Below are positions 6,787 to 53,092 of a stretch of 64,000 nt of DNA, in pieces (the first letter of the stretch is position 1; each line of letters starts with the position of its first letter). The stretch covers positions 186,001 to 250,000 of IMG/VR virus record IMGVR_UViG_3300018080_008436; one strand, given 5' to 3'. A program made the position numbers and the translations under genes. Below the pieces are notes generated by a model that saw nothing but the letters and a program-made list of their open reading frames with translations, did no database searches and was not told the DNA's origin.

Positions 6787-6972
6787 TTCAGTACCTCTTG
6801 TTTGTAGTTTTTAGAAATTCAGTAAAGTACTATTATACATATTTTTCAACGTATTTTCCTACTATAATTCAAAAAAAAAATAAGAAAGCAAGTCGAAAGA
6901 CTAAAAAAGGGAGATCTTTTTTATCATATCTCCCTCTCAGAGTCATAAGTTGTTGAAAATTAATGACTTTTG

Positions 6973-7352
6973 TGGAGATGGCGAGAGTCGAACTCGCGTC
7001 CAGTATATCGATCCAAAAAGGTCTCTACATGCATAGTTGAGTGATTGTTTTTCAGGCTCATCCCAACAAGCCCTTAATCGTCTTACCGATTGTAGCAGTC
7101 TTTCCTATTGTCAGCGATCTTTCTCGTCGTAGCGTCCTATTCCACCAACGTGATCTTTTCTTCTGTCTGCTCAGTTAAAAACAGGCAACCCTGAGTAAGA
7201 CATCCGCTTGATTAAGCGGCTACTGCCGAAGCAGTAGGGAATTCAATTACTTTTTTAGCAATTATATTTTTGACCGATGATTAACGAGGCCAACGATCAT
7301 CCTCGACATGCAACCTAGATTTCATGACACCTGTCGATACCATTTCATCCCC
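6973..7352 (-). ncRNA. ssrA: tmRNA
   Basis: 5' GGGGATGAAATGGTATCGAC; 3' GCGAG-TTCGACT-CTCGC-CATCTCC-A; G3.U70 acceptor pair; tag frame 7259-7212 after ATAATT encodes AKKVIEFPTASAVAA-stop; CCA not encoded. Confidence 0.96.
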
Positions 7353-9375: not shown

Positions 9376-9450
9376 ATGTCAGTACAAGTTCAGCAGAATA
9401 ATCAAAATAACCAAGCCCTTGAGGGTTTTGGGAGGTTGTTCTCTGCTTGA
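9376..9450 (+). CDS. putative attenuator leader peptide MSVQVQQNNQNNQALEGFGRLFSA
   Basis: TAAGGA SD; 9 of codons 4-13 are Gln/Asn; followed by a terminator and then Gln/Asn tRNAs. Confidence 0.88.
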   Translation: MSVQVQQNNQNNQALEGFGRLFSA

Positions 9451-9467
9451 ACATAATCCGATTTACC

Positions 9468-9500
9468 AAAGCCCTCAGGTTTCGACCTGGGGGCTTTTTT
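9468..9500 (+). terminator. attenuator terminator A
   Basis: AAAGCCCTCAGG-TTTCGA-CCTGGGGGCTTTTTT. Confidence 0.9.
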
Positions 9501-9502
9501 AT

Positions 9503-9579
9503 TGTCCGATAGCATAACTGGCTAATGCAACTGGTTCTGATCCAGTAGATTCTAGGTTCAAATCCTAGTCGGACAACCA
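9503..9579 (+). tRNA. tRNA-Gln(CTG)
   Basis: TGTCCGA/TCGGACA acceptor; ACTGG-TTCTGAT-CCAGT; encoded CCA. Confidence 0.93.
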
Positions 9580-9581
9580 AT

Positions 9582-9655
9582 GGCTCTGTAGCTCAGTGGC
9601 GAGCATTTGGCTGTTAACCAAAAGGAAGCGAGTTCGATTCTCGTCGGGGCCTCCA
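9582..9655 (+). tRNA. tRNA-Asn(GTT), short D-loop
   Basis: TTTGG-CTGTTAA-CCAAA; T arm GCGAG-TTCGATT-CTCGT; CCA. The 6-nt D loop and U73 are atypical. Confidence 0.8.
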
Positions 9656-9677
9656 GAAGTTCTTTGATAATTTATGT

Positions 9678-9768
9678 TGGTAGGTGACCCGAATGGTAAG
9701 GGCCTCGGCTGTTAACCGAGTATGGGCAGGGATGTCCTTTGCGAGTTCAAGTCTCGCCCTACCAGCCA
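9678..9768 (+). tRNA. tRNA-Asn(GTT) with long variable arm (type II)
   Basis: CTCGG-CTGTTAA-CCGAG, then V-arm GGGCA-GGGA-TGTCC; G73; CCA. Confidence 0.88.
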
Positions 9769-9771
9769 AAC

Positions 9772-9896
9772 TGTGGCGTAGCTTAATGGTTAAAGCTCTA
9801 AAAGAAAGGAGTCTGATAATAAGACTCGTTACTGCAATAATTATTCTAAATTCGTCTATTAAACGAGAGATCTTGGTTCGAATCCAAGCGCCACAG
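9772..9896 (+). tRNA. tRNA-Asn(ATT) with a 53-nt insert (9800-9852) in the anticodon stem
   Basis: TGTGGCG/CGCCACA acceptor. Removing 9800-9852 gives a perfect CTCGT-CTATTAA-ACGAG arm and a 72-nt cloverleaf. No encoded CCA. Confidence 0.7.
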
Positions 9897-9904
9897 CTAA
9901 TGAT

Positions 9905-9981
9905 TGCCTCGTAGCATAATTGGTATTGCACCAGATTTTGATTCTGGGAATTTCTGGGTTCGAGTCCCAGCGAGGCATCCA
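9905..9981 (+). tRNA. tRNA-Gln(TTG)
   Basis: TGCCTCG/CGAGGCA; CCAGA-TTTTGAT-TCTGG; CCA. Confidence 0.92.
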
Positions 9982-10032
9982 TTTTTTACCACAAATCGTT
10001 CTATTGGTAACATTAATTTGTATAATAAAACT

Positions 10033-10776
10033 ATGTTCCCAAAAGTGGAGTCGGTTGTGAAAGAAAGGGAAAAAAGAAGTTTACTTTGGCACAAATATAA
10101 TGATGAAGAATTTAGAGAACTAGTAAAAAAGTCTCAAACATATTCTGACATACTTAGAGATCATGGCATGTCAAACAAAGGGGGGAATTGCAACACGCTA
10201 AAAAAGAGAATTGCTAAACTTGGGGTTAATGACGATCATATTGCAAAGGGGCATTCTTCTAATAAAGGTAAAAAGTTCATCTCTAAAAAGATTCCACTTA
10301 ATAAGATACTTGTAGAAAATTCTACCTACAATAGGGGGCATCTAAAAAATAGAATTATAGAAGAGAAACTAATAGATTACAAATGTCAAAAATGCGGAAT
10401 AACAAATAAATGGGAAGGCAGTGAACTTGTTTTAGTACTTGATCACATAAATGGTGTCAGTAATGATCATCGACTAAAAAACCTTCGTTTTCTATGCCCC
10501 AACTGCAACAGCCAGACAAAAACTTTTGCTGGAAGAAGTAAACGCAAAAGATATTACTGTGAACAATGCGGAAAAGAAAAATCGTATAAGCATTCTAAAA
10601 AATGCAAAAGTTGTGCCGCAAAAGATCTAGAAAAACGTAAAGTCCAAAACCGCCCTTCCAAAGAAGAACTTGCCGAAATGATTGATACAATGTCTTGGCT
10701 GGCAATCGGAAAAAAATATGGAGTTTCTGATAATGCAATCAGAAAATGGGCAAGATCTTACGGTATAATATCCTAA
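10033..10776 (+). CDS. HNH homing endonuclease with C-terminal HTH
   Basis: CQKC...LDHINGVSNDHRLKNLRFLCPNCNSQT. Start is ATG 10033 or GTG 10057 (GGAG upstream), not 9904, which lies at the tRNA. Confidence 0.9.
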   Translation: MFPKVESVVKEREKRSLLWHKYNDEEFRELVKKSQTYSDILRDHGMSNKGGNCNTLKKRIAKLGVNDDHIAKGHSSNKGKKFISKKIPLNKILVENSTYNRGHLKNRIIEEKLIDYKCQKCGITNKWEGSELVLVLDHINGVSNDHRLKNLRFLCPNCNSQTKTFAGRSKRKRYYCEQCGKEKSYKHSKKCKSCAAKDLEKRKVQNRPSKEELAEMIDTMSWLAIGKKYGVSDNAIRKWARSYGIIS

Positions 10777-10794
10777 CCTTAATGGAGAAGAGCA

Positions 10795-11028
10795 ATGAAA
10801 TTCCGCATCAAATACAAAAAAGGATTGGGCTTTTACGCTCAAGTCAAAAGATCATTCTGGGAAAACTGGATGAAAATTGGCAAACACACTGTTGGTTTTG
10901 GTCACTACCGCGAGGATTGCCTAAGCCATCCAATGGAAACCATTGAAGAAGCCAAGAAACGTGTTGAAAAGTACAAGGAGTGGGTAAGACTAACCAATCA
11001 AAAAGCAGAATATTACGAACTTCCATAA
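10795..11028 (+). CDS. hypothetical protein
   Basis: 77 aa with GGAG upstream. Confidence 0.6.
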   Translation: MKFRIKYKKGLGFYAQVKRSFWENWMKIGKHTVGFGHYREDCLSHPMETIEEAKKRVEKYKEWVRLTNQKAEYYELP

Positions 11029-11076
11029 TGGACAACAGACCGAAAGTCATAAAAGAAGCTGTTGACAAGATAACTG

Positions 11077-11116
11077 AATCAGAAGGTTGCGAGTTCGATC
11101 CTCGCTGGGACATCCA
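11077..11116 (+). pseudogene. 3' half of a tRNA (T arm, 3' acceptor strand, CCA)
   Basis: AATCAGAAGGTT-GCGAG-TTCGATC-CTCGC-TGGGACA-T-CCA; no 5' TGTCCCA strand upstream. Confidence 0.7.
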
Positions 11117-11138
11117 AATTTTGTATAATAGGAATAAT

Positions 11139-11212
11139 TACCCTATAGTGTAATGGTAGCACAAAAGTTTTTGGCACTTTTGGTCGGGGTTCAAATCCCT
11201 GTAGGGTAGCCA
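11139..11212 (+). tRNA. tRNA-Gln(TTG)
   Basis: TACCCTA/TAGGGTA; AAAGT-TTTTGGC-ACTTT; U1-A72, G73; CCA. Confidence 0.9.
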
Positions 11213-11263
11213 ACTATCTCCCCTCCTGTATAATATCTCTAAACCTTATAGGAGAAACCATTC

Positions 11264-11437
11264 ATGTCTAAAGAATTCGCCATCAATTCAAAAGAAATTA
11301 ACGAGAATAAGAGATATTCACTTTTAGCTTATGTCATAAACGAAAGATTACGTTTAGAAGGGATTAGCACAAACATTAACATACGTGAAACTGCTGATAA
11401 AATCATAGTTGACGTAAACAAGAAAGATACCACTTAA
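11264..11437 (+). CDS. small hypothetical protein (57 aa)
   Basis: AGGAGA SD, MSKEFAINSKEINE...; below the ORF-track cutoff. Confidence 0.55.
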   Translation: MSKEFAINSKEINENKRYSLLAYVINERLRLEGISTNINIRETADKIIVDVNKKDTT

Positions 11438-11679
11438 CACTTGGCTTTCATAAAAACATAGCAAATACTTGAGAGTAATGAAGTGAACGATCTAGAAAGA
11501 CATAAACAAAGACTAGCCCAAATCCATTCAGATAGCAAAAAGATAAGAGAAGATGTGGAAAACACTCTGAACATATTCAAAATATTATGGTGTCTCTTCA
11601 AAGCTTGGAGATTAAAATCAGAAGTAATTTATATAATCAAAGAGCTTGAAAAATCCTCATAACTTGCTATACTACCTGT

Positions 11680-11844
11680 ATGGCTAAAAAGAAGAAAAAG
11701 AAATACAAGAACTTCCTGGAATTCCTTGAAACCCGTCTGAATAGCGAGAATTTTAAGAAAAACGCTAGTGAAGAAGAATACCAGAAGACTCTTGAAAAAT
11801 ACAAGAAAGAGAAACTCATCCAACGATTCGGGAACAAAAAATGA
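11680..11844 (+). CDS. small basic hypothetical protein (54 aa)
   Basis: MAKKKKKKYKNFLEFLE...; ATGA overlap with the next ORF; promoter TTGAAA-16-TATACT at 11646-11673. Confidence 0.55.
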   Translation: MAKKKKKKYKNFLEFLETRLNSENFKKNASEEEYQKTLEKYKKEKLIQRFGNKK

Positions 11845-12200
11845 AACCATTTGAAGAAGTCTTTAAGATGTATCACGACATGGCAGGAGAGTGGAGAATG
11901 AATCTCGACAATCTGGCTTCTCTTCATCCTGACAGTCATATTGTTTTCGGAGCCGAAGAACCTGAATATGTATCAAAAGACTCTGTTATTGAAATGGATG
12001 TTTATCTCGCTGGAGAGAAAATCGGAGTCACAAGAGCCTGCGGAGAATTAGACAATGATGTCATTCGCAGAAATATGATTGGAATGAAAAGAGTCGGAGT
12101 AAAAAATGAGAGTGGTCATCACAATGCTTACTCCACAGGATTTGAGTTAACAGTTGATAAGGATAATAAAAGGATAGATTTAACTCCAAAAAAGTTTTAG
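11841..12200 (+). CDS. hypothetical protein
   Basis: 119-aa ORF whose stop overlaps the first base of tRNA-Cys. Confidence 0.65.
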   Translation: MKPFEEVFKMYHDMAGEWRMNLDNLASLHPDSHIVFGAEEPEYVSKDSVIEMDVYLAGEKIGVTRACGELDNDVIRRNMIGMKRVGVKNESGHHNAYSTGFELTVDKDNKRIDLTPKKF

Positions 12201-12319
12201 GTCGCGTAGTGTAATGGCAAGCATCTTATAAAATGAACCTGACATAAGGTTCTCTTCAGCAATAGTTAAAATCGTCTGCAAAACGAAGGGTCTGGGTTCG
12301 AATCCCAGCGCGACCTCCA
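12200..12319 (+). tRNA. tRNA-Cys(GCA) with a 45-nt insert (12228-12272) in the anticodon stem
   Basis: GGTCGCG/CGCGACC, U73, CCA. Removing 12228-12272 gives a perfect TTCGT-CTGCAAA-ACGAA arm. Confidence 0.8.
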
Positions 12320-12339
12320 ATTTAACATGTCAATTTAGT

Positions 12340-12367
12340 TTGACAAATTCAAAGCTGATGCTATATT
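12340..12367 (+). promoter_or_regulatory. sigma70-type promoter of rtcB
   Basis: TTGACA-16 nt-TATATT. Confidence 0.7.
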
Positions 12368-12411
12368 TATAGTATCGGCTTTTTTATGCAACAAAAAAAA
12401 CAGGTAGAAAG

Positions 12412-13680
12412 ATGATAATTTTGAAAGGCAAATACAACGAAGCGAAGATTTTCACAGATAACGTTGAATCTTCTGCTCAGGGCCAGATCATTACCTTCTT
12501 AAATGACAAAACATTTGAGAACGGAAATATCAGGATCATGCCAGATGTTCATGCAGGTGCAGGAGCCGTTATCGGGTTTACCGCTCCAGTTGGAGATAGG
12601 ATCATTCCAAACGTCATTGGAGTTGATATTGGCTGTGGAGTCTGCGCGTTCAAACTTGGACACAGAAAAGACATTGGTGAGAAGTTTGACAAACTCGACA
12701 AATTCATTGAAAAAACCATTCCTCATGGAATGAACGTTAATGGGGACTACAGAGATCTAGCCAAAAGCGGATATTGTGGAACCAAGGATGAGTTTGACGC
12801 ATTTACCGCAGAAGTAAAAGAAGTCTGCAATAGAACTGAACAGAACTTTACCAGAGTTATGTGCTCTTTGGGTTCTTTAGGTGGTGGAAACCATTTCATT
12901 GAAATTGACAAAGATGACGAAGGTAACCTCTGGTTAGTTGTTCATTCTGGTTCCAGGAATTTCGGTTTACAGATCGCCAAGTATCACCAGAACAAAGCAA
13001 AAGAATACTTGGACTTCATGAAATCGTCTGAGAACGCTAAGTTAGTGGCAGAAGTCAAAAAGACTGCGAACAAAAAAGAGATATCTGGGAAGATCAAAAA
13101 AGCCAAAGATGAGGCTAAAGAGAAGTATGGTGTACATACTGGTCTTGAGTATCTTGAAGGTGGAGGTGCTGACCAATATAAAAAGGATATGGACGTAGCT
13201 CAAAGGTTCGCAAGTTTTAACCGATTGGTTATGGTTGGTCGAATCGTTGAAGGTTTTTATGGACTGAAGTATTCAGAGATGGAAGTTTATCACTCAATCC
13301 ATAACTATATCAACTTCGAAGATGGAATCGTTCGAAAAGGAGCAATCTCTGCTCATTGTGGTGAGAAAGTTGTCATTCCTTTAAATATGGCTGATGGAAC
13401 AATCATTGGCATCGGAAAAGGAAATGAGGACTGGAATAACAGTGCGCCTCATGGAGCAGGACGTAAAATGTCCCGTTCAAAAGCCAAGAAGTCTTTGGAT
13501 GTGGATTATTTCAGGAAAAGAATGAAACAAGCTGGAGTCTGGTCTAGTTGTGTTGGAAAAAGTACATTGGATGAAGCACCAATGGCTTACAAAAAGGCCC
13601 AAGAGATTATTGACTATTTGGAGCCAACTGTTGAGATCCAATGTCACATGAAACCAGTTTATAACTTCAAGGCGCATTAA
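12412..13680 (+). CDS. rtcB: RtcB-family RNA 2',3'-cyclic/3'-phosphate ligase
   Basis: MPDVHAG, GVDIGCG, GSLGGGNHFIE, VHSGSRNFG, HNY, RKGA, SAPHGAGR, DEAPMAYK. Confidence 0.97.
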   Translation: MIILKGKYNEAKIFTDNVESSAQGQIITFLNDKTFENGNIRIMPDVHAGAGAVIGFTAPVGDRIIPNVIGVDIGCGVCAFKLGHRKDIGEKFDKLDKFIEKTIPHGMNVNGDYRDLAKSGYCGTKDEFDAFTAEVKEVCNRTEQNFTRVMCSLGSLGGGNHFIEIDKDDEGNLWLVVHSGSRNFGLQIAKYHQNKAKEYLDFMKSSENAKLVAEVKKTANKKEISGKIKKAKDEAKEKYGVHTGLEYLEGGGADQYKKDMDVAQRFASFNRLVMVGRIVEGFYGLKYSEMEVYHSIHNYINFEDGIVRKGAISAHCGEKVVIPLNMADGTIIGIGKGNEDWNNSAPHGAGRKMSRSKAKKSLDVDYFRKRMKQAGVWSSCVGKSTLDEAPMAYKKAQEIIDYLEPTVEIQCHMKPVYNFKAH

Positions 13681-13682
13681 GC

Positions 13683-13988
13683 ATGACTAAAGAAGAGATT
13701 AGAGAATGGATGAGATCCGCAGAATGTGTCGCAACTCATAGATATGAAGATTATGGTAACATATACCAATCCAGAATCTATGAGAAAGATGGGAAGCTCT
13801 ACTTAATAGAACTTTGCAATGGTGGAGTCTCAGAGAAATTTGGAAAGAAAGGATACATACGTGGAGAGTATGAACTTGTCGAAGTTCAGAAAAGAGAATA
13901 TACCGTTCAGATGGATGTTACTGAATACTCTGTTGATGGGCAAGGCGTTGTTTATGAAAAAGACGAGTGGATAGAGGTGGAACAATGA
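13683..13988 (+). CDS. hypothetical protein
   Basis: 101-aa ORF in the rtcB run. Confidence 0.65.
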   Translation: MTKEEIREWMRSAECVATHRYEDYGNIYQSRIYEKDGKLYLIELCNGGVSEKFGKKGYIRGEYELVEVQKREYTVQMDVTEYSVDGQGVVYEKDEWIEVEQ

Positions 13989-15031
13989 GAGTTCTAGTTA
14001 CTGGAATGATTGCAGGTCTTGGTGAAGAACAGTATATCAAGAAAGTCATCAACCTCGGAAAGGATGATGGAGTTTGCATCCAATACTACAACCTTCTTAA
14101 ATGCCTTCAATCGACTTCTGGGACCAATCGACTCATGGGGGCAACCAACTACCTGTTTGAGGTTCTAAGAGAGCGAGAATACGCTAAAATCGGTTGTGCG
14201 CTTGCAGATGATGACTGCGAGAACGCAATTATAAGAGTTCCTGCAACAATTGCCTGGAATCATGTCAACCACAAGCTCAAAGACCACAAAATCATCAAAG
14301 AGATTATTAAACCTGATGTGGTCGTTACTTTGATTGATGCGGAGTGGACAATTCGGAAAAGATTGGGGCAGGGGCATTTCAACGATCCATTTCGCAAACA
14401 AATCAATGAAGAGAACCCATCTATTCAACATGTGTTACGTTGGATGAATGAAGAGGTTAGTTTGTCTGAAGATTGGGCAAAATATTTTGGTGTTCCTCAT
14501 TATGTCATTCCCATGGCTCAACATCCTTGGTCTTTGTATAAATTAATCAAACATCCAAATATCCCATCCTTTTACGTTTCGTACTCGATGACTCATGCAG
14601 ATGATGAAGCTCGTAAAAAAATTAATGAGGTTGTTTTAAAACTTTGTGATTATGGACTGGTAATTGATCCTCAAGCAATTGAAATTGGTCATCAGAAGAT
14701 GAGTTCTTTGGACAAAGAATTCACTTACTCCTTTACTGTTCATAGAGACTTACACTGGTTTGTTGGTAAAGTTGATTCTGTTGTTGCGATCCATCCATAT
14801 GATACAAAACCTCCTTTGTCCACTGGTATGATGGATGAGTTAGGTCATGCCAGGGATTATATGAAGAATAGATATATGATTTTCCCACCTGAGCATTTGA
14901 GTCCATTCACTACCAACAGTTATGTTGACAAAGGATGTGTATTTAAAGATGCTAAGTCATTCTTCATCGCTCTTGAAGAAGAAGGGTATGAACAACTGGA
15001 AGATTTGTCAAATTTGGAGTTAGAAAAATGA
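13985..15031 (+). CDS. putative kinase-like protein fused to a nucleoside-deoxyribosyltransferase-like domain
   Basis: MRVLVTG start; PDVVVTLID; C-terminal FYVSYSMT...RDLHWFV..VD.VVA...LSTG...E..HA. The P-loop is degenerate. Confidence 0.45.
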   Translation: MRVLVTGMIAGLGEEQYIKKVINLGKDDGVCIQYYNLLKCLQSTSGTNRLMGATNYLFEVLREREYAKIGCALADDDCENAIIRVPATIAWNHVNHKLKDHKIIKEIIKPDVVVTLIDAEWTIRKRLGQGHFNDPFRKQINEENPSIQHVLRWMNEEVSLSEDWAKYFGVPHYVIPMAQHPWSLYKLIKHPNIPSFYVSYSMTHADDEARKKINEVVLKLCDYGLVIDPQAIEIGHQKMSSLDKEFTYSFTVHRDLHWFVGKVDSVVAIHPYDTKPPLSTGMMDELGHARDYMKNRYMIFPPEHLSPFTTNSYVDKGCVFKDAKSFFIALEEEGYEQLEDLSNLELEK

Positions 15032-15353: not shown

Positions 15354-16334
15354 ATGAAGAGAATTATTTTTTTTTGTTTGGCGGTAATTTGTGTAACAGT
15401 ATTTGCGAAAGATGAGAACAAATACAGATCGATCTCTTTGTATGAAGAGAATGACATTGTTGCAGGCACTGACCTTGACTATACAAATGGTTTCAGGTTA
15501 CAGTACATCAGTAGTGATATTGAGACCTGGGACTTGCCAGACTGGGCCATCAAAATTGGCAAGAATCTTCCGTTATTCAATCATGAAGGTTACAAAAACA
15601 ATATTGGGATCGGATTTGGTCAGGATATGTACACTCCTACCGATATTGAAGATTTCAATTTAAGAGAAGATGACAGGCCATACGCAGGATGGCTGTATTT
15701 AGCCTTTAGTCTACATCATAAAGACGAAAATGATTTACATAAGTTGGAGTTGACGTTGGGAGTTGTTGGTCCTTACTCATTAGCTTGTGATACCCAAAAA
15801 ACAATTCATGAGTGGATTGATTCAAGAAACCCAAATGGTTGGGATCATCAGTTGGGTAATGAGTTCGGCTTGAACCTATCTTATGAATTCCGCAAGAAGT
15901 ATCTTTTCTTAGATAATTGGGTTGATGTTATCCCTAGTGCTAAGGTTAGTATTGGTAACGTTTCAACATATTTAGCAACTGGAACTACTGTTCGTTGTGG
16001 ATATAACTTGCCGAATGATTTTCATAGCAACAGGATTAGTTCTTCTGGGTTTGCTTTGCCAACCAATTACAGCAACAAAGGGGATTGGAGTGTTTATATT
16101 TTTGGCAATGTAACTGGATATGCAGTTGCTAGAGACATCTTCTTGGATGGAAATACCTTTGAGGACAGTCATAGCGTCGATAAGAAGCATTTTAAGGCCG
16201 AATTCGAGCTAGGAGTCGGGATGAGCTACAAACGCTTTTTTATGACCTATACAAGGGTTTATAAGACGAAAGAGTATGATACTCAGGAAAAGAATCATAC
16301 TTATGGATCTGTAAACCTTGGATTCAGGTTCTAA
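15354..16334 (+). CDS. lpxR: LpxR-family (lipid A deacylase-like) outer-membrane beta-barrel
   Basis: Signal peptide; ENDIVAGTDLDYTNG, GQDMYTP, DRPYAGWLY, GWDHQL, RDIFLDGNTF; C-terminal Phe. Confidence 0.85.
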   Translation: MKRIIFFCLAVICVTVFAKDENKYRSISLYEENDIVAGTDLDYTNGFRLQYISSDIETWDLPDWAIKIGKNLPLFNHEGYKNNIGIGFGQDMYTPTDIEDFNLREDDRPYAGWLYLAFSLHHKDENDLHKLELTLGVVGPYSLACDTQKTIHEWIDSRNPNGWDHQLGNEFGLNLSYEFRKKYLFLDNWVDVIPSAKVSIGNVSTYLATGTTVRCGYNLPNDFHSNRISSSGFALPTNYSNKGDWSVYIFGNVTGYAVARDIFLDGNTFEDSHSVDKKHFKAEFELGVGMSYKRFFMTYTRVYKTKEYDTQEKNHTYGSVNLGFRF

Positions 16335-22567: not shown

Positions 22568-25500
22568 TTATTCCTCAAAACCATCTCCAAAATACTGCTC
22601 TGGGAATGCCTCTGAGCTACTTGATTCTGAATATTCTTCGGAACTACTACTTGATTCTGAATATTCTTCGGAACTACTACTTGATTCAGATTCTGAACTT
22701 GAACTTTCGCTTTCTGAACTACTTGATTCGCTTTCTGAACTACTTGATTCTGAATATTCTTCGGAACTACTACTTGATTCAGATTCTGAACTTGAACTTT
22801 CGCTTTCTGAACTGCTTGATTCGCTTTCTGAACTGCTTGATTCGCTTTCTGAACTTTCACTCTGGGATGAGGACGATTCAGACTGAGAACTACTGGACTC
22901 TGACTGAGATGATTCACTCTGGGAACTACTGGATTCTGATTTGGAACTACTGGATTCACTTTGAGATGATTCACTCTGGGAACTACTAGATTCTGACTGA
23001 GAACTATCACTCTGGGATGAGGACGATTCAGATTTGGAACTACTAGATTCTGACTGAGAACTATCACTCTGAGAACTACTAGATTCTGATTTGGAACTAC
23101 TAGATTCTGACTGAGAACTATCACTCTGAGAACTACTAGAACTTTCTGAATAACCTTCTGAACTAGTTGAAGAACTTTCTGAATATTGTTCAGAACTAGA
23201 ACTTGATTCATTTGGACAATCATATGGAGCAGTTGGAACATCAAAATTATCAGTCCAAACAGCTAAACCTTTAACAATTCTAACTTCATCTATATGACCA
23301 CCAAAATATGTTCCACCTCTGGTATAATATCCTATGTAAGATTGTTGGGTAAAATTAGTAAATGTACCTGAGTATGAGCCAGTTGATGTTTGAGCTACAC
23401 CATCAATATACAAGGTCTGCGTATTATTATCTGCATTATGAACAAACGCAATATGCGTCCATGTACTGGAAGAAATCGCACTATTACTCATAATTTCAAA
23501 ATCCCAAGATCCTCCAGTAAGATGACCAGCATACACAACTCCGTTCAATGCTACATAAACTGTGAATAAGTTGTTTGTATCTGTACGAAATTCTATAAGT
23601 CCTCCGCCAGCAGTATATCGTGCCCAACAATCAAACGTAAGGCTCCCAGATCCGATGTTCCAATCATCGCTGTCAGGAATTGATAGGTAATCAGAATTAC
23701 CATCTAACAAGAGACTTGCTCCACCAAATTTACTTTGAGCAGTATCAACTTGAGCAGTGCCATTTGCCGTAACAACATGTTTACTGTCAGATTCATCTGG
23801 GAAGTTAGTTGATCCATCCTCTCCGTCGCAGTGAAGAAGAAGTTTTGTATTCAAGCAAACTTGTTCAGTTGACTCAGATGAACTTTCTGAGTAACCTAAC
23901 GAAGACGAACTAGAACTCTCTGAATAACCTTCTGAACTACTACTTGATTCTGAACTTGAACTTTCGCTTTCTGAACTGCTTGATTCGCTTTCTGAACTGC
24001 TTGATTCGCTTTCTGAACTGCTTGATTCGCTTTGTGAACTGCTTGATTCGCTTTGTGAACTATTTGACTGAGAGCTACTTGACTCTGATTGAGATGACTC
24101 ACTCTGAGAACTAATACTTTCAGTAAAAAGATCACAAGGAAGATAGATGTGATTTATATTCTCAGTTGAACTACTTGAGCTTTCTGATTTGGAACTACTT
24201 GATTCAGAGTAATTTTCTGAAGAACTTGAACTTCCTGAGCTTTCAGATTGAGAACTTTCAGATTGGGACGACTCTGATTGAGAACTTGAACTTTCAGATG
24301 AACTACTGGATTGTGACGACTCAGATTGCGAAGAAGAACTTTCAGATTGCGAAGAAGAACTCTCTGAGAATCCTTCAGATGAACTACTGGATTGTGACGA
24401 CTCAGACTGCGAAGAGGAACTTTCAGATTGCGAAGAAGAACTCTCTGAGAATCCTTCAGATGAACTACTGGATTGTGACGACTCAGACTGCGAAGAGGAA
24501 CTTTCAGACTGCGAAGAAGACGATTCTGATTGACTACTTTCTGAATACCCACCTGAACTACTAGACTCTGATTGTGATGACTCTGATTGTGATGACTCTG
24601 AGCTAATACTCTCAGTAAACAAGTCACACTCTCTATACCTATGTCGAACATTCTCGGTTGAACTACTGGATGAGTTACTACTAGAGGATTCACTACTAGA
24701 GGATTCACTACTTATGCTTTCAGTAAACAATTCGCAAGGAAGATAGCCGAAGTGAACATTCTCAGTTGAGCTACTTGAAGACTCACTTGATTCGGATTGA
24801 GATGATTCACTTTGAGATGAAGACGACTCAGATTCAGATTTTGATGATTCACTCTGAGAACTGTCTGATTGTGATGAACTGGATTCAGATTTTGATGATT
24901 CACTCTGACTACTTGAGCTTTCTGACTTACTGGATTCTGATTGACTACTGTCAGACTGCGAACTGTCTGATTGACTACTGTCAGACTGCGAACTTGAGGA
25001 CTCAGATTTTGACGATTCACTTTGAGATGATTCAGAATAAGAACTTATACTTTCAGTAAACAAATCACATGGAGCGTACTCATGATTTACATTCTCAGTG
25101 GAAGAACTGCTTGAACTCTCTGATTGAGAACTCTCACTTTGACTAGAAGATGATTCTGATTGAGAGGAGCTTGATTCTGAATAATTCTCAGAACTTGTGC
25201 TTGAACTCTCAGAATAACCTTCACTTGAAGTCGATGAACTTGAATCCTTGGAAGAACTTGAACTTGAATCCTTGGAAGAACTTGAAGAACTTACAGGACA
25301 AACTCCAGGCTCTAACGTTGGCGCAGGAGATGTTCCTGTATTTACAAACCATTCCAATGAACTTGGTGATACCCATGGTGCTGTTACGGCTGTATCGTAT
25401 ACAGATACTCCATCTAAGATATCAGACATCGTCCATTTACTTGAATCTGAAAAATATAAAAACCTAGATCCGTTGTAATAATATGTTGTATCATTATGTA

Positions 25501-28500
25501 CTCCAGCACTCAAATAATTCCCATTATAGCTCCCATCTCCCGCCAATTCTGCACAATATCTAATTGCCAAATCTTCGCTAGATATTGAGCTTGTACTGGA
25601 TGACTCAGAATAATTCTCTGATGAACTTGACTCAGATTGAGAGGAACTTGATTCTGATTGAGATGATTCAGATTGAGAACTACTTGATTCACTTTGAGAC
25701 GAAGAGCTTTCGGATTGACTACTTGATGATTCAGACTGAGATGATTCAGACTGAGATGAAGATGATTCAGACTGAGAAGAACTTGACTCACTTTGTGATG
25801 ACTCAGATTGAGAACTTTCAGATTGACTACTATCTGATTGTGATGAGCTTGACTCAGATTGAGATGAAGAACTCTCAGACTGAGAGCTTATACTCTCTGT
25901 AAATAAATCACATTCTGCATACTCAAAATTGACATTCTCAGTTGAAGAACTGCTTGAATCACTTTGAGAGCTACTGGATTCAGAATAATTTTCAGAAGAG
26001 CTACTGGATTCGCTTTTTGAGCTTGAAGATTCTGACTGAGATGAAGAACTTTCAGAATAATTTTCAGAAGAACTACTGGATTCGCTTTGCGAACTTTCTG
26101 ATTGAGATGACTCACTCTGAGATGATTCTGATTGAGAACTACTTGACTCAGAATAATTTTCTGATGAACTCGAACTTCTTGAGCTTTCGCTTTGCGAACT
26201 ATCTGATTGTGATGAACTTGACTCAGATTGAGATGAAGAACTCTCAGACTGAGAACTTATACTCTCTGTAAATAAATCACATTCTGCATACTCAAAATTG
26301 ACATTCTCAGTTGAAGAACTGCTTGAATCACTTTGAGAGCTACTGGATTCAGAATAATTTTCAGAAGAACTACTGGATTCGCTTTGTGAGCTTGAAGATT
26401 CTGACTGAGATGAAGAACTTTCAGAATAATTTTCAGAAGAACTACTGGATTCGCTTTGCGAACTTTCTGATTGAGACGACTCACTCTGAGATGATTCTGA
26501 TTGAGAACTACTTGACTCAGAATAATTTTCTGATGAACTCGAACTTCTTGAGCTTTCGCTTTGCGAACTATCTGATTGTGATGAGCTTGACTCAGATTGA
26601 GATGAAGAACTCTCAGACTGAGAACTTATACTCTCTGTAAAAAGCGCACACTCTTCATATACATAATTAATGTTCTCAGTTGAACTACTAGACGATTCTG
26701 ATTGACTACTACTTGACTCCGATTGAGAACTACTCGACTCCGATTGAGAACTACTTGATTCTGATTGAGATGAAGAACTCTCAGAATAGTTTTCTGAAGA
26801 ACTTGACGATTCAGATTGGCTACTGCTTGATTCACTCTGAGATGAAGACGATTCAGATTGAGACGATTCACTCTGAGATGAGGATGATTCAGATTTGGAA
26901 CTACTTGATTCTGATTGAGATGATTCACTCTGAGATGACTCTGATTTACTGCTACTTGATTCACTTTCAGATTGAGAACTCTCGGACAAAGATGAACTTG
27001 ACTCGCTTTGAGAACTTTCACTCTGAGAGCTACTGGACTCGCTTTGAGATGAGCTTGATTCAGACTGAGAACTTTCAGATTGAGAACTAGAGCTTTCTGA
27101 TTGGCTACTGGAACTTTCAGATTGAGATGAACTCGATTCAGATTGAGATGATTCACTTTGGCTACTTTCGCTTTGTGAACTGCTTGATTCTGATTGACTA
27201 CTTGAACTCTCTGATTGAGATGACTCACTCTGAGAACTAATACTCTCGGTAAATAAATCACAAAGTGCGTACTCAAAATTAACATTCTCAGTTGAACTAC
27301 TTGAACTTTCACTTTTTGAACTAGAGCTTTCGGAGACTGAGCTTTCGGAGACTGAGCTTTCAGAATAATTCTCAGAACTTGTACTTGACGATTCTGAATA
27401 ATTTTCACTTGAAGTCGATGAACTTTCAGAACTCGCAGAATAAACTTCGCTTGAAGTCGATGAACTTGAATCCTTGGAAGAACTTGAACTTGAATCCTTG
27501 GAAGAACTTGAAGAACTTACAGGACAAACTCCAGGTTCTAGTGTTGGAGCAGGAGGAGTCCCAGAAATTACAAACCATTCCAATGAACTCGGTGACACCC
27601 ATGGTTCTGTTGAGGCCGTATTATATGCAGAAGTACCTCCTAGAACATCAGACATTACCCATTTACTTGAATCTGAGAAATATAAGAACCTAGATCCGTT
27701 GTAATAATATGTTGTATCATTATGTACTCCAGCTATCTGGTAATTTCCATTAAATGATATGTCTCCAGCAAGCTCAACACAAATAGTTCCTGGCAGATTC
27801 CCACTAGAAATTGAAGAACTTGAAGAAAACTGCTCTGAACTACTTGAACTTCCTGATGACTCAGAACTATTTGAATATTGTTCTGATGAACTACTTGATT
27901 CAGATTTGGAACTAGACGATTCTGATTGAGATGAGGAACTTTCTGACTGGGATGATTCTGACTGTGAAGACTCGCTCTGAGAACTGCTGGATTCACTTTG
28001 GCTACTAGAACTTTCACTCTGGGAACTGCTAGATTCTGATTGGCTACTGTCAGACTGGGAGCTTTCGCTTTGAGAACTTTCAGATTGCGAACTAGAAGAT
28101 TCACTGTCACTCTGGGACGAATCGCTCTTTGAACTACTAGATTCGCTTTGAGATGATTCGCTTTGAGATGATTCGCTTTGAGATGATTCAGATTGGGAAC
28201 TCTCACTTTGACTAGATGATGATTCAGATTTACTACTGCTTGATTCAGACTGGGAACTTTCTGACTGACTGCTACTCGATTCACTCTGAGAGGAGGAACT
28301 TTCTGACTGAGAACTCTCGGATTGAGACGACTGAGAAGATTCTGATTGAGAGCTTGAGCTTTCTGACTGGGAGCTATCACTTTGGCTACTGCTACTCTCT
28401 GACTGAGAAGATTCAGATTGTGAACTACTTGATTCAGATTGTGAACTACTTGATTCAGATTGTGAACTGCTACTCTCTGACTGAGATGATGAGCTTTCTG

Positions 28501-30151
28501 ATTGAGAACTTTCAGATTTACTACTGCTCGATTCACTTTGGGAAGACTCAGATTTGGATGATTCAGATTGGGATGATGAACTCTCTGATTTTGAACTACT
28601 GGATTCGGATTGAGACGATTCACTCTTACTACTACTGGACTCGCTTTGAGAGCTTTCGGATTGAGACGAAGAACTTTCAGACTGCGATGATGAACTCTCG
28701 GATTGAGATGACTCAGATTGGGAACTCTCAGATTGTGAGCTAGAAGACTCGCTATCACTCTGGGACGACTCAGATTGGGAACTGCTAGACTCAGACTTAC
28801 TACTCTCAGATTGAGACGATTCTGACTGTGAACTTTCACTTTGAGAACTACTTGATTCACTTTGAGAGGATGAACTCTCGGACTGACTACTCTCACTCTT
28901 TGAACTACTTGACTCTGATTGGGACGACTCACTCTTTGAACTACTTGACTCTGATTGGGACGACTCACTCTGAGACGATTCCGACTGTGAACTTTCACTT
29001 TGAGAACTGCTTGATTCTGATTGAGAACTTTCGGACTGACTACTTTCACTCTTTGAACTACTTGATTCACTCTGAGATGATTCACTCTGAGATGATTCAC
29101 TCTGAGATGATTCACTCTGAGAGCTACTTGATTCCGATTGAGAACTCTCACTTTGAGAACTTTCAGAATGCGCCAAACTTGAAGTTGATGAACTTGAATC
29201 CTTGGAAGAACTTGAACTTGAATCCTTGGAAGAACTCGAAGAGCTTACAGGACAAATTCCGTTCTCTGTTACTGGGGCTGGAGGAGTTCCATTATCAACA
29301 AACCAAGACAAATACCCAGGACCAATCCAAGGGGGAACTAAGTTTGTACTATACGCAGATACCCCTCCAAGAGTCGTTGACAATGTCCATCTACTAAGAT
29401 TCGAATAAAATAGAAATCTTGATCCACTGGAATAATAAACTGTCTCATTGTAAATGCCAACAGCACTGTAAGTAGCATTATAAGAAGTATCTCCAGCATG
29501 TTCCACACAAACATCATCTATCAAACCGCCACTAGAAATTGAAGAACTTGAAGAAAACTGCTCTGAACTACTTGATTCAGATTGAGATGAGGAGCTTTCA
29601 CTATATAGTTGAGATGAGGAGCTACTTTCACTTGACTCACTTGAGATACTTCTGGAACTATCGGAATAATTCTCTGATGAACTTGACTCGCTTGAGATAC
29701 TACTTGAACTCTCAGATGATCCAGAGCTAACACTATATTGTTCTGAACTACTTGAGCTACTTTCACTAGAGCTACTATCACATAAAGTTGGGAGACGAAC
29801 AATAGTTATTGAAGGCCAAACGCCTGTTGTAGTTTGAGCATCAATAAATGTTTGAACCTGTGGTATTGTTGGGTCAGGAGTTATGATATCTGTGAACACC
29901 CAAGCATATTCACAACGAACATCATTAATTGATCTGTCAACATTGCCATCAAAATCAGCATCAGGTATCTCAGGAAGTCTAGCAACAGTTATCGATGGCC
30001 AAACGCCTGTTGCTGTTTGAGCATCAACAAAATCTTGAACCTGAGCTATACTTGGGTTAGGAGTAAATTGATCTACAAAAACCCAAGCATAATAAATACG
30101 AACATCATTTATAGTGATGTCTTTGTCATTGTCGAAATCTGCACAACCCAT
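22568..30151 (-). CDS. 2527-aa serine-rich repeat protein: dockerin-like N-terminus, three repeated domains, LamG-like domain
   Basis: Uninterrupted 7.6-kb frame; DFDNDKDITIND / DFDGNVDRSIND loops; (SQSESSS)n tracts; LLLHCDG...SLLLDGNSDYLSIPDSDDW LamG-type segment. Confidence 0.9.
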   Translation of the reverse strand: MGCADFDNDKDITINDVRIYYAWVFVDQFTPNPSIAQVQDFVDAQTATGVWPSITVARLPEIPDADFDGNVDRSINDVRCEYAWVFTDIITPDPTIPQVQTFIDAQTTTGVWPSITIVRLPTLCDSSSSESSSSSSEQYSVSSGSSESSSSISSESSSSENYSDSSRSISSESSESSSSSQLYSESSSSQSESSSSEQFSSSSSISSGGLIDDVCVEHAGDTSYNATYSAVGIYNETVYYSSGSRFLFYSNLSRWTLSTTLGGVSAYSTNLVPPWIGPGYLSWFVDNGTPPAPVTENGICPVSSSSSSKDSSSSSSKDSSSSTSSLAHSESSQSESSQSESSSSQSESSQSESSQSESSQSESSSSKSESSQSESSQSESSSSQSESSQSESSQSESSQSESSSSKSESSQSESSSSKSESSQSESSSSQSESSSSQSESSQSESSQSESSKSESSSSQSESSQSDSESSSSQSESSQSESSQSESSSSQSESSSSQSESSQSESSSSKSESSQSESSSSKSESSSSQSESSKSESSQSESSSSKSESSQSESSSSQSESSSSQSESSSSQSESSSSQSESSQSESSSSQSDSSQSESSSSQSESSQSSQSESSQSESSSSQSESSSSQSESSQSESSSSKSESSSSQSESSQSESSQSESSQSESSQSESSSSKSDSSQSDSESSSSQSESSQSESSQSDSSQSESSSSQSESSSSQSESSSSQSESSQSESSQSESSSSQSESSSSKSESSSSSEQYSNSSESSGSSSSSEQFSSSSSISSGNLPGTICVELAGDISFNGNYQIAGVHNDTTYYYNGSRFLYFSDSSKWVMSDVLGGTSAYNTASTEPWVSPSSLEWFVISGTPPAPTLEPGVCPVSSSSSSKDSSSSSSKDSSSSTSSEVYSASSESSSTSSENYSESSSTSSENYSESSVSESSVSESSSSKSESSSSSTENVNFEYALCDLFTESISSQSESSQSESSSSQSESSSSQSESSQSESSQSESSSSQSESSSSQSESSSSQSESSQSESSSSQSESSSSQSESSQSESSSSLSESSQSESESSSSKSESSQSESSQSESSSSKSESSSSQSESSQSESSSSQSESSSSQSESSSSSENYSESSSSQSESSSSQSESSSSQSESSSSQSESSSSSTENINYVYEECALFTESISSQSESSSSQSESSSSQSDSSQSESSRSSSSSENYSESSSSQSESSQSESSQSESSQSESSSSSENYSESSSSQSESSSSQSESSSSSENYSESSSSQSDSSSSSTENVNFEYAECDLFTESISSQSESSSSQSESSSSQSDSSQSESSRSSSSSENYSESSSSQSESSQSESSQSESSQSESSSSSENYSESSSSQSESSSSKSESSSSSENYSESSSSQSDSSSSSTENVNFEYAECDLFTESISSQSESSSSQSESSSSQSDSSQSESSQSESSQSESSSSQSESSSSQSESSQSESSSSQSESSSSQSESSSSQSESSQSESSSSQSESSSSENYSESSSTSSISSEDLAIRYCAELAGDGSYNGNYLSAGVHNDTTYYYNGSRFLYFSDSSKWTMSDILDGVSVYDTAVTAPWVSPSSLEWFVNTGTSPAPTLEPGVCPVSSSSSSKDSSSSSSKDSSSSTSSEGYSESSSTSSENYSESSSSQSESSSSQSESSQSESSSSSSTENVNHEYAPCDLFTESISSYSESSQSESSKSESSSSQSDSSQSDSSQSDSSQSESSKSESSSSQSESSKSESSSSQSDSSQSESSKSESESSSSQSESSQSESSESSSSSTENVHFGYLPCELFTESISSESSSSESSSSNSSSSSTENVRHRYRECDLFTESISSESSQSESSQSESSSSGGYSESSQSESSSSQSESSSSQSESSQSSSSSEGFSESSSSQSESSSSQSESSQSSSSSEGFSESSSSQSESSSSQSESSQSSSSSESSSSQSESSQSESSQSESSGSSSSSENYSESSSSKSESSSSSTENINHIYLPCDLFTESISSQSESSQSESSSSQSNSSQSESSSSQSESSSSESESSSSESESSSSESESSSSESSSSSEGYSESSSSSSLGYSESSSESTEQVCLNTKLLLHCDGEDGSTNFPDESDSKHVVTANGTAQVDTAQSKFGGASLLLDGNSDYLSIPDSDDWNIGSGSLTFDCWARYTAGGGLIEFRTDTNNLFTVYVALNGVVYAGHLTGGSWDFEIMSNSAISSSTWTHIAFVHNADNNTQTLYIDGVAQTSTGSYSGTFTNFTQQSYIGYYTRGGTYFGGHIDEVRIVKGLAVWTDNFDVPTAPYDCPNESSSSSEQYSESSSTSSEGYSESSSSSQSDSSQSESSSSKSESSSSQSDSSQSESSSSKSESSSSQSDSSQSESSSSQSESSQSESSSSKSESSSSQSESSQSESSSSQSESSSSQSESSESESSSSESESSSSESESSSSESESSSSSEEYSESSSSESESSSSESESSSSESESSSSSEEYSESSSSSEEYSESSSSEAFPEQYFGDGFEE
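25830..26640. repeat. 369-bp tandem repeat, about 2.2 copies
   Basis: The same sequence recurs at 25838, 26207 and 26576; antisense ORFs are duplicated at the same offset. Confidence 0.85.
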
Positions 30152-36349: not shown

Positions 36350-36437
36350 TGGTGGAGCCGACAGGATTCGAACCTGCGCGGAGCTTGCGCTCTCTTGATT
36401 AAAAGTCAAGTACCTTCAGCCACTCGGTTACGACTCC
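36350..36437 (-). tRNA. tRNA-Lys(TTT) with long variable arm (type II)
   Basis: CTTGA-CTTTTAA-TCAAG; V-arm GAGC-GCAA-GCTC; type II-like D arm; A73; CCA. Confidence 0.9.
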
Positions 36438-51944: not shown

Positions 51945-52026
51945 TGGTATGGGGGGTGGGACTTGAACCCACAGAAATTCACTTGTTTATAAGACAAGCC
52001 GCTTAACCAAATTTGCGTACCCCCAC
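51945..52026 (-). tRNA. tRNA-Ile(TAT)
   Basis: CTTGT-CTTATAA-ACAAG; 9-nt variable region; A73; CCA. Confidence 0.85.
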
Positions 52027-52287: not shown

Positions 52288-52292
52288 CAAAC

Positions 52293-52373
52293 AAGCTGAT
52301 TTATTTTTTGAAGGGTTTGAACCTTCTAGATGGTGTAAGCATCGTTAACCTGTTTTTTGCTGTAATCAGCCTT
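52293..52373 (-). ncRNA. small RNA with end-pairing stem, ACAGCAA motif and a T-arm
   Basis: AGGCTGATT/AATCAGCTT stem; internal GAAGG-TTCAAAC-CCTTC. Confidence 0.55.
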
Positions 52374-52999: not shown

Positions 53000-53092
53000 T
53001 GGTGGAGAAGATTGGAGTCGAACCAATTAAAATTGTTTGCCGAAGAGAGCCTTATAACAAGCTCAGTTTGCCCTCCGCAGGGCATCTTCTCC
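53000..53092 (-). ncRNA. tRNA-like RNA lacking a canonical anticodon arm
   Basis: GGAGAAG/CTTCTCC acceptor, GCCCT-GCGG-AGGGC arm, ATTGG-TTCGACT-CCAAT T arm, ACCA; the centre is the hairpin+TCTTCGGCAA element. Confidence 0.65.

Follow-up and report, generated by a model that had tools for sequence, protein, structure and literature searches.

The 64-kb stretch of DNA analysed here, which we call the window, spans positions 186,001-250,000 of the 476,248-bp viral contig IMGVR_UViG_3300018080_008436 from a sediment metagenome, and it contains two tRNA genes whose anticodon stems are each interrupted by a short insert of related design, the second of them followed, 93 nucleotides (nt) past its CCA, by the start of a gene for the RNA ligase RtcB (Table 1). 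The first gene, with the anticodon AUU, combines the acceptor stem UGUGGCG/CGCCACA with D, anticodon and T arms and scores 45.5 bits with the Rfam tRNA model against a gathering score of 29 (9772-9896, with a 66-nt insertion in the anticodon arm); the second, a tRNA-Cys gene with the acceptor stem GGUCGCG/CGCGACC and canonical acceptor, D and T arms, scores 40.2 bits with the same model (12200-12316, again with a large insertion in the anticodon arm). ARAGORN calls neither gene. Both inserts follow one layout, consisting of an A-rich lead, a 6-bp hairpin, four further nucleotides, the motif C(U/A)GCAAU and an A/U-rich tail, and their excision between nt 28 and 29 (27/28 is equivalent) leaves anticodon stems with five pairs out of five, CU-CGU/ACGAG and UU-CGU/ACGAA, where the hyphen marks the junction. 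With scores at or above the gathering score, complete stems and, in the Cys gene, U73 accompanying the GCA anticodon, the two genes fit what is expected of functional tRNAs, the AUU anticodon being atypical for a decoder. An earlier note on this DNA had described two tRNA genes with related 45- and 53-nt inserts at 28/29, the restored 5-bp stem, the resumption of both genes at CGTCT and the distance to the RtcB gene; direct reading and the profile searches confirm all of this, including 3' exons that both begin CGUCU. It had also given the two hairpin sequences correctly while exchanging the genes to which they belong, GAGUCU/AGACUC being that of the AUU gene and GAACCU/AGGUUC that of the Cys gene.

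Table 1. Interrupted tRNA genes, copies of the inserted element and neighbouring genes in the window (window position 1 is contig position 186,001)
Feature	Position	Strand	Description	Basis
tRNA gene 1	9772-9896	+	Anticodon AUU (loop CUAUUAA), discriminator G, no encoded CCA	Rfam tRNA model
Insert of tRNA gene 1	9800-9852	+	53 nt between nt 28 and 29: A-rich lead 9800-9808, GAGUCU 9809-9814, loop GAUAAUA 9815-9821, AGACUC 9822-9827, spacer GUUA 9828-9831, CUGCAAU 9832-9838, A/U-rich tail 9839-9852	Direct reading
Free-standing HNH homing endonuclease gene	10033-10776	+	Within the tRNA cluster	Profile search
tRNA gene 2	12200-12319	+	Cys-GCA (loop CUGCAAA), U73, encoded CCA	Rfam tRNA model
Insert of tRNA gene 2	12228-12272	+	45 nt between nt 28 and 29: lead AUAAAAU, GAACCU 12235-12240, loop GACAUA 12241-12246, AGGUUC 12247-12252, spacer UCUU 12253-12256, CAGCAAU 12257-12263, tail 12264-12272	Direct reading
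RtcB RNA ligase gene	12412-13680	+		Pfam RtcB E 1.1e-66; PHROG tRNA splicing ligase E 9e-131
Gene for a 354-amino-acid (aa) protein	13967-15031	+	N-terminal P-loop (adenylate-kinase-like, AAA_17) fold	Structure search
Fourth copy, open (permuted) form	52292-52372	-	In minus-strand order: AGGCUG (52372-52367), AUUA, CAGCAAA (52362-52356), anticodon-arm-like hairpin (loop CUUACAC), T arm GAAGG-UUCAAAC-CCUUC, A-rich stretch, CAGCUU-G (52298-52292)	Pattern scan
Third copy, in a tRNA-like minigene	53000-53092	-	In minus-strand order: acceptor GGAGAAGA, hairpin, helix GAGCUU (53064-53059)/AGGCUC (53052-53047), UCUU, CGGCAAA (53042-53036), T arm UUGG-UUCGACU-CCAA, UCUUCUCC, ACCA	Pattern scan; called by no tRNA tool

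The hairpins of the two inserts differ by two compensatory base-pair changes and are more stable than shuffled sequences (z about -3.3 and -2.4), a 15-base pattern common to both occurs at these two sites of the window only, where none would be expected by chance, and a structural scan for over-long tRNAs that took in about 1.3 Mb of unrelated loci found the AUU and Cys genes alone. The Cys gene, insert included, is identical in contigs of two further metagenome runs, and the DNA contigs of four runs carry the same sequence, with no insert-free allele seen among them. A low-depth 566-nt contig of the source sample (run X1) joins window position 9769 to 9893 with 11 other letters in between; it may represent a relative that lacks the whole AUU gene, and as the joint is flanked by 30 nt it could belong to another organism.

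The inserts are members of a wider family, whose common element we refer to as the module. Scans of IMG/VR with the exact consensus of the earlier note returned this contig and chance matches only, the consensus being too strict. A sequence-agnostic pattern (D loop, 65-95 nt, T loop) gave 62 loci, many of them from huge phages and with several insert classes at the same place in the tRNA, and a second pattern, AGG-N7-CAGCAAT-N26-42-T loop, gave more than 120 loci among the matches listed; further tRNA-embedded copies of the window's own class lie elsewhere on the source contig (L171, anticodon GAG; loci are given as L numbers) and on a related 296-kb contig (L185). Because these collection patterns demanded a GGTTCGAATCC T loop, and one of them also a GTAGNNTAATGG D loop, the unit counts that follow are lower bounds and the common tRNA backbone is partly an effect of selection, the Ro60-locus test described below being the only one that is independent of RNA patterns. 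The 179 units extracted from the fetched phage loci and tRNA arrays consist of a helix 5' strand NNNCCU, followed by G in 175 of them, a 3' strand AGGNNN, a 4-nt spacer and the sequence C-A-G-C-A-A, which is invariant save for its second position (A in 170 of the 179); one C of NNNCCU, given as the fifth base, is U in a minority of units, the window's AUU copy among them. The helix occurs in 44 distinct sequences, its first pair shows all four Watson-Crick types, and a perfect partner for the unit's own strand is present in 189 of 261 motif occurrences, as against 63 when the strands are borrowed from other units. A covariance model of the module, 46 nt long and built from 16 copies off other contigs, places the Cys insert first in the window (16.8 bits, E 0.048) and the AUU insert third (10.8 bits, E 3.2), which, coming from so short a model, is weak support.

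The module is found in three gene topologies, namely within tRNAs, as the closure of circularly permuted tRNAs, and as the closure of small RNAs whose tRNA cargo is partial or absent, the last being the kind to which the two minus-strand copies of the window belong. The first topology, to which the two interrupted genes of the window belong, is represented by 20 non-redundant examples, in whose RNAalifold consensus the helices of the acceptor, the D arm, the T arm and the module all reappear, with double-sided changes in 16 of 22 pairs. The junction 28/29 is the only option allowed in every strictly parsed embedded copy and gives a 5/5 anticodon stem in all 20, while the pairs on either side of the insert, 27:43 and 28:42, covary. 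The embedded forms have an encoded CCA, U73 with Cys anticodons and G73 with Asp and Asn anticodons, and their loops keep U33 and R37; anticodon loops of 8 nt occur in 5 of the 20, some copies place Ser, Leu or Tyr anticodons on bodies with a short variable arm, and most of the arrays sampled also contain a normal tRNA that duplicates the anticodon.

The commonest topology is that of the permuted complete tRNAs, which run from the 3' half of the module through the anticodon arm, the variable loop, the T arm and the 3' strand of the acceptor to a short linker (often UUGGUC), and from there through the 5' strand of the acceptor, the D arm, nt 26 and an A-rich stretch to the 5' strand of the module. 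A complete tRNA can be parsed from 31 permuted units; their acceptor stems covary and come in 17 distinct forms, the junction is mostly 26/27, and GUA is the anticodon in 14 of them. The conserved linker UUGGUC, which closes the acceptor stem, has its complement in the 5' leader UUUGACCAUU of permuted units such as L208:2335-2465, and UGGUC/UUGACCA is similar to the helix through which animal Y RNAs bind Ro. In related phages, the tRNA arrays that bear the module also harbour GOLLD RNAs, permuted transfer-messenger RNAs (tmRNAs) and Polynucleobacter-1 RNA (L276:5070-5488, L269:2699-3162, L302:1476-1864, L218:10790-11187, L218:9381-9527). The observations on anatomy, covariation and topology support the view of the inserts as a true RNA element, modular and conserved, as opposed to the product of decay. 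The earlier note had proposed a new small tRNA intron or mobile RNA module, perhaps cut by a nuclease and ligated by RtcB; the modular element is borne out, and excision with ligation by RtcB is the less likely part of the proposal, the module also closing RNAs that are not tRNAs.

A census of neighbouring genes, made by clustering the open reading frames (ORFs) of 122 module loci, puts at the top a 170-aa DSP-type phosphatase (33 loci), a metallophosphoesterase (24 loci), a 472-aa protein with DUF2828 and DUF7788 domains (24 loci, or 33 by tblastn) and an AAA_33 P-loop kinase (20 loci), with GIY-YIG and HNH endonucleases also among the commonest. RtcB as a constant neighbour is ruled out, as tblastn gave zero matches to it in the flanks of the 122 loci. 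The 472-aa protein is predicted to have the Ro60 fold, that is, a ring of HEAT repeats joined to a vWA domain: its AlphaFold2 model (predicted local distance difference test score 86.7, predicted template modelling score 0.86) retrieves with Foldseek, as top matches over its whole length, the Ro60 structures 2i91 and 1yvr (template modelling (TM) score 0.65, E 4e-8, about 545 columns), and also the Ro60 of Thermus phage phiLo (9l5y/9kop), while Pfam assigns VWA_2 and DUF7788, not TROVE, to the family. More than 2,800 proteins of this DUF2828 Ro60-like family were found at E <= 1e-5 among 8,000 candidates scored.

The module is linked to these genes tightly and in a strand-specific manner. When loci were obtained by the Ro60-like protein alone (the best 80 of more than 573), 74 of the 80 contained at least one unit, at a density of 38.8 units per 100 kb, compared with 3 of 118 unrelated loci (0.49 per 100 kb) and 1 of 21 RtcB loci (1.24 per 100 kb), and in this protein-fetched set the units lie on the strand of the Ro60-like gene in 175 cases out of 176. 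Of the 39 loci in which the flank ahead of the Ro60-like gene is complete, 25 have a minimal unit, about 55 nt long, whose end lies 15-35 nt before the start codon. This unit is composed of helix, CAGCAAC, small hairpin, A-rich stretch and helix (L319-L398, about 15-90 nt 5' of the start codon; e.g., L321:2416-2471), and its place in or just ahead of the 5' untranslated region of most DUF2828 Ro60-like genes could be that of a basic Y RNA or of an autoregulatory binding site. L138, a locus obtained by way of its RtcB gene, has a single promoter ahead of three units with non-tRNA cargo; the Ro60-like gene comes next, and RtcB 1.3 kb after it. Seven loci pair tRNA-embedded copies with a Ro60-like gene in the fetched flank (L151, L154, L174, L168, L226, L268, L314), and in L168 a unit lies 340 nt downstream of that gene.

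The same tRNA site (27/28-28/29) also accommodates a second class of insert, 50-56 nt long, in other huge phages (L148, L160, L184, L164, L165, L167, L173, L178, L196, L180, L190, L195, L205). Its consensus, ...ACCGAAYAGGUCGAYMGG.AAAGGUUAUC, which also reads ...CCGAAYAGGUCGA...GGUUAUC, carries the CGAA motif of classical bacterial Y RNAs, and a canonical TROVE+vWA_Ro60 gene lies about 0.1-1.7 kb from the insert in all four loci tested (L160, L184, L180, L190). A class II aminoacyl-tRNA synthetase gene is also found nearby in L160. Further inserts of 40-60 nt between the D and T arms (L152/L162/L193, L170/L192, L155, L176, L172, L198, L169, L200) fit neither the CAGCAA nor the CGAA class, and some of them do not cleanly restore the anticodon stem. 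The Rfam model of YrlA, the tRNA-like bacterial Y RNA (RF02553, gathering score 69), aligns end to end with a permuted unit at L208:2097-2212 (30.8 bits, E 2.5e-5) and gives 21.3 bits on window positions 9715-9833, both scores lying below that threshold; it has no match on the Felixounavirus or cyanophage units described below.

We consider it probable that each insert is a handle of the Y-RNA type by which a Ro60-fold protein would bind, set into the anticodon stem of a complete tRNA and used in repair or counter-defence together with RtcB. The handle, made up of the short closing helix and the single-stranded CAGCAA, would be bound by the phage Ro60-like DUF2828/DUF7788-vWA ring protein. In the window, two tRNAs that are otherwise complete would have received it at 28/29, in the 5' strand of the anticodon stem, so that each transcript would fold into the usual L-shaped tRNA body with one additional arm branching off at a three-way junction. 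Such RNAs would most likely work unspliced, the handle recruiting the Ro60-like protein and the tRNA body with its anticodon loop acting as effector or bait domain, as in bacterial YrlA, and the setting would be one of phage RNA repair or counter-defence in which the neighbouring RtcB ligase may also be used. The 6-bp covarying helix beside CAGCAA fits the Y-RNA pattern of a closing helix next to a conserved motif, and the position of the gene beside a Ro60 orthologue on the same strand is seen in the module family, in L138 and in Felixounavirus, though not within the 64-kb window. That the module closes stand-alone non-tRNA RNAs directly 5' of Ro60-like genes is the signature of a Y-RNA protein-binding module rather than of an intron, and the AUU anticodon, the 8-nt loops, the Ser, Leu and Tyr bodies with short variable arms and the duplicate anticodons within arrays favour a mimic or bait over a decoder. 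The connection with RtcB is plausible by analogy, given that RtcB accompanies Ro60 and Y RNA both in Salmonella (PMC4201824, PMC7790460) and in L138.

Several points weigh on the other side of the balance. No Ro60-like gene lies within the 64-kb window of the 476,248-bp contig, and the module-only covariance model supports the window's copies weakly (E 0.048 and 3.2). YrlA replaces the anticodon stem, whereas the handle of the window sits inside it. The embedded forms keep CCA, matching discriminators, U33 and R37, which suggests aminoacylation; the permuted copies hold a complete tRNA from which nothing is missing, as a cut-and-join pathway would need; and end-healing enzymes are among the commonest neighbours of the module.

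These last points lead to the alternative that survives best, which we regard as possible though unlikely, namely that the module is a true protein-dependent tRNA intron excised at 28/29 (26/27 in the permuted genes) by an endonuclease. The cut would leave a 2',3'-cyclic phosphate and a 5'-OH, to be sealed by RtcB here and by Pnk, phosphoesterase and ligase elsewhere, and the Ro60-like protein could act as chaperone or guide; the system would be the counterpart, in a bacterial virus, of the bulge-helix-bulge splicing known from archaea and algae and would likewise repair permuted tRNA genes, and it predicts products of 72-76 nt with the 28/29 junctions ...CAUCUU-CGUCUGCA... and ...GCUCU-CGUCUAUU.... 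Intron-containing and permuted tRNA genes occur in algae and archaea, and the intron would account for the single junction that suits 20 of 20 embedded copies with full stems and covarying pairs 27:43 and 28:42, for the 31 permuted units that re-form complete canonical tRNAs, for discriminator bases that match the anticodons and the encoded CCA, for the RtcB gene 93 nt downstream of the Cys gene, and for the kinase, metallophosphoesterase and phosphatase (20, 24 and 33 loci) that head the list of neighbours. It does not account for the module as the closure of RNAs with no tRNA to repair, nor for the absence of RtcB from the flanks of the 122 module loci, and the distances to the junctions vary (7-10 nt for the helix, 8-14 nt for CAGCAA), so that there is no obvious ruler; moreover, neither a bulge-helix-bulge nor a known ribozyme nor a candidate endonuclease was found, and Ro60 proteins are not known to be nucleases. 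A bolder version, which we think quite unlikely, makes the helix and CAGCAA the recognition signal of a Ro60-assisted cut-and-rejoin pathway that splices the interrupted and re-orders the permuted phage tRNAs, with RtcB, or Pnk, a phosphoesterase and a ligase, sealing the ends; if true, archaea and eukaryotes would no longer be the only groups with a tRNA splicing system that is enzymatic and not a ribozyme.

Known kinds of self-splicing or enzymatic intron can be set aside more firmly. The bulge-helix-bulge requires a 4-bp helix between two 3-nt bulges, and it is ruled out because this helix is not formed: the copies of the window show 0-2 of the 4 central-helix pairs at every junction option, and all 20 embedded copies show 0-3 of 4 for junctions from 26/27 to 29/30, never 4 of 4, which agrees with the earlier note, where no such motif had been seen. 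Its remark that the inserts are far too short for group I or II introns is likewise borne out, as Rfam searches at E up to 10 over positions 9400-12500 returned no family but tRNA and no group I/II intron; inserts of 45 and 53 nt in a stem, with no match to an Rfam intron family, rule out a group I intron. Models of hammerhead, twister, pistol, hatchet and HDV/theta ribozymes gave no match at E up to 10 over the same positions or in related units, and no splicing endonuclease of the EndA/Sen type appeared among the ORFs scanned near the genes. Three further foldings were judged by eye and rejected as not conserved across the copies: a hammerhead-like three-way junction, an anticodon-intron pairing through GCAAUA, and a pairing of the two ends of the insert.

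That the genes are decayed tRNA pseudogenes, or that the inserts are selfish DNA without RNA function, such as a hairpin of the miniature inverted-repeat transposable element (MITE) or IS200/605 type, appears very improbable. Such a view can draw on the AUU anticodon, which is not that of a normal decoder, on the failure of ARAGORN to call the genes and on the HNH gene in the same tRNA cluster, but compensatory changes maintain all four tRNA stems and the module helix in 20 copies, independent samples yield an identical sequence, and units are strand-locked to Ro60-like genes. The earlier note had linked decay to an insert position that is not conserved among relatives; the position is kept, 28/29 fitting all 20 tRNA-embedded copies, and it is set by tRNA structure while the flanking sequence differs. 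Insertion of an IS200/605 or MITE element is rejected specifically, there being no terminal inverted repeats and no target duplication (never more than 1-2 nt). Hardly credible is a signal at the DNA level, for instance a phage promoter with TTGACA/CTGACA-like hexamers in the loop or leader and CAGCAAT near the -10 position: the loops often read (C/U)UGACA and permuted units begin UUUGACC about 14-17 nt ahead of CAGCAAU, but the spacing to -10-like hexamers is inconsistent, the helix strands are 60-250 nt apart in permuted units, all three units of L138 come after one clear promoter, and the two strands covary, which requires single-strand pairing and rules the promoter out.

The surroundings of the two genes deserve brief description. 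Between tRNA-Cys and RtcB lies a promoter-like TTGACA..TATATT; RtcB joins a 3'-phosphate or 2',3'-cyclic phosphate end to a 5'-OH. The 354-aa protein encoded next, for which Pfam gives zero matches, resembles AAA_17 kinases over residues 7-198 in an ESM Atlas structure search (TM 0.46-0.49 by query, about 0.8 by target), and as a lead from this structural likeness it may possibly be an end-healing kinase that joins RtcB in an RNA-repair module. Homologues of the HNH endonuclease stand near interrupted tRNAs in L164, L167, L179 and L192. The other RNA genes of the window, as called by ARAGORN and Rfam, are one tmRNA and 16 ordinary tRNAs; the tmRNA is phage-encoded and full length (6970-7352, minus strand, 143.5 bits, tag AKKVIEFPTASAVAA). 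Directly 5' of the AUU gene is a 91-nt tRNA (9678-9768, plus strand) with the Asn anticodon GUU, yet with a long, class-II-like variable arm, and two tRNAs on the minus strand are unusually long for their type, tRNA-Lys(UUU) with 88 nt (36350-36437) and tRNA-Ile(UAU) with 82 nt (51945-52026). Among the protein-coding genes, a homologue of LpxR, the lipid A 3'-O-deacylase (15354-16334, plus strand, Pfam E 4e-102), points to a Gram-negative host, an ORF of 2,527 aa occupies 22568-30151 on the minus strand, and six ORFs of 290-330 aa each, possibly paralogues, follow one another at 40877-46457 on the same strand. In GenBank phages, nothing but RtcB matches this region of the window.

Units of the family are also present in cultured phages, namely in Synechococcus phage BUCT-ZZ01 and in 212 Felixounavirus records (95-99% identity), where they are unannotated or labelled hypothetical or "tRNA-Thr". 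In Escherichia phage AYO145A (L318) a Ro60-like gene, annotated as "RNA-binding protein" and with a product 40% identical to that of the metagenomic locus L266, heads the tRNA array, and the unit lies about 1 kb downstream. The same array contains four annotated tRNA pseudogenes (Pseudo-GTA, -TAG, -GTG, -GCA), which may be further tRNA mimics. In the related Felixounavirus Bas63, the Ro60-like protein gp130, whose gene heads a tRNA array, counters the Ppl defence system, and some of the Bas63 "tRNAs" were guessed to be Y RNAs without identification of the RNA partner (2024 preprint, 10.1101/2024.10.10.617714). Other parts of the picture are established: tRNA-like Y RNAs of the YrlA type beside Ro60 (Chen et al. 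2014, PMC4201824), the Salmonella rsr-yrlBA-rtcBA operon (PMC4201824; PMC7790460), and the binding of Thermus phage phiLo Ro60 to two CGAA-type Y-like RNAs, phiRo60-Yrl1/2, and to host PNPase (PMC12135203); comparative genomics of jumbo phages has moreover noted an RNA-repair platform made up of TROVE proteins and a tRNA-like partner (PMC7824862).

Ro60/Y-RNA particles and tRNA-like Y RNAs are therefore already known. Apparently undescribed in the literature searched, in which we found no report of interrupted or permuted phage tRNA genes, are the RNA partners of the very large phage DUF2828 Ro60-like family, their motif of a short helix followed by CAGCAA, and their construction as complete tRNAs that are interrupted at 28/29 or circularly permuted. 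These RNAs lie concealed within the tRNA arrays of phages, passed over or wrongly labelled by tRNA finders, and annotators gain a rule for "broken" phage tRNAs. The Ppl-countering protein Bas63 gp130 is now linked to concrete RNA genes in tractable phages of E. coli and Salmonella, and the question for the bench is sharpened to a choice between Ro-bound tRNA mimics and tRNAs that would be the first in the bacterial world to be spliced or permuted.

The module can be compared with several known systems. Group I introns of bacterial and phage tRNAs also interrupt tRNA genes and often have homing endonuclease genes nearby, but their length is about 200 nt or more, their site is the anticodon loop and they possess a P1-P9 ribozyme core, in contrast to 45-53 nt in the stem at 28/29. 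The bulge-helix-bulge introns that archaea and eukaryotes have at non-canonical tRNA positions, and the tRNA genes that are permuted or split in Cyanidioschyzon, green algae, Thermofilum and Nanoarchaeum, share with the module a short insert at a non-canonical tRNA site, the use of one element in both continuous and circularly permuted genes, and RtcB as the ligase of the pathway; the phage module differs in having no bulge-helix-bulge, in residing in a bacterial virus with no splicing endonuclease found, in possessing a conserved sequence of its own and in occurring also without any tRNA. Bas63 gp130 is of the same protein family as the module-linked protein and its gene has the same position at the head of a tRNA array; unlike in that work, the unit is located here in 212 Felixounavirus records and its motif defined, and the phage of the window is unrelated to Bas63 and carries the module inside true tRNAs. 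A further parallel is offered by the YrlA-type bacterial and phage Y RNAs, which likewise combine a closing helix and an adjoining conserved single-stranded motif with a tRNA-like body, lie on the same strand beside a Ro60-fold gene and have RtcB nearby, as in the Salmonella rsr-yrlBA-rtcBA operon, and whose arm order of T arm, closed acceptor and D arm is retained by the permuted phage units. The motifs differ, CAGCAA being distinct from GGUCCGA and GNCGAA and following the helix, whereas the GNCGAA/CGAA of YrlA lies within it; the phage partner belongs to the divergent DUF2828/DUF7788 family and not to Pfam TROVE; and the genes of the window, unlike YrlA, have real tRNA topology, with an open acceptor, encoded CCA, a full anticodon arm and the handle inserted at 28/29.

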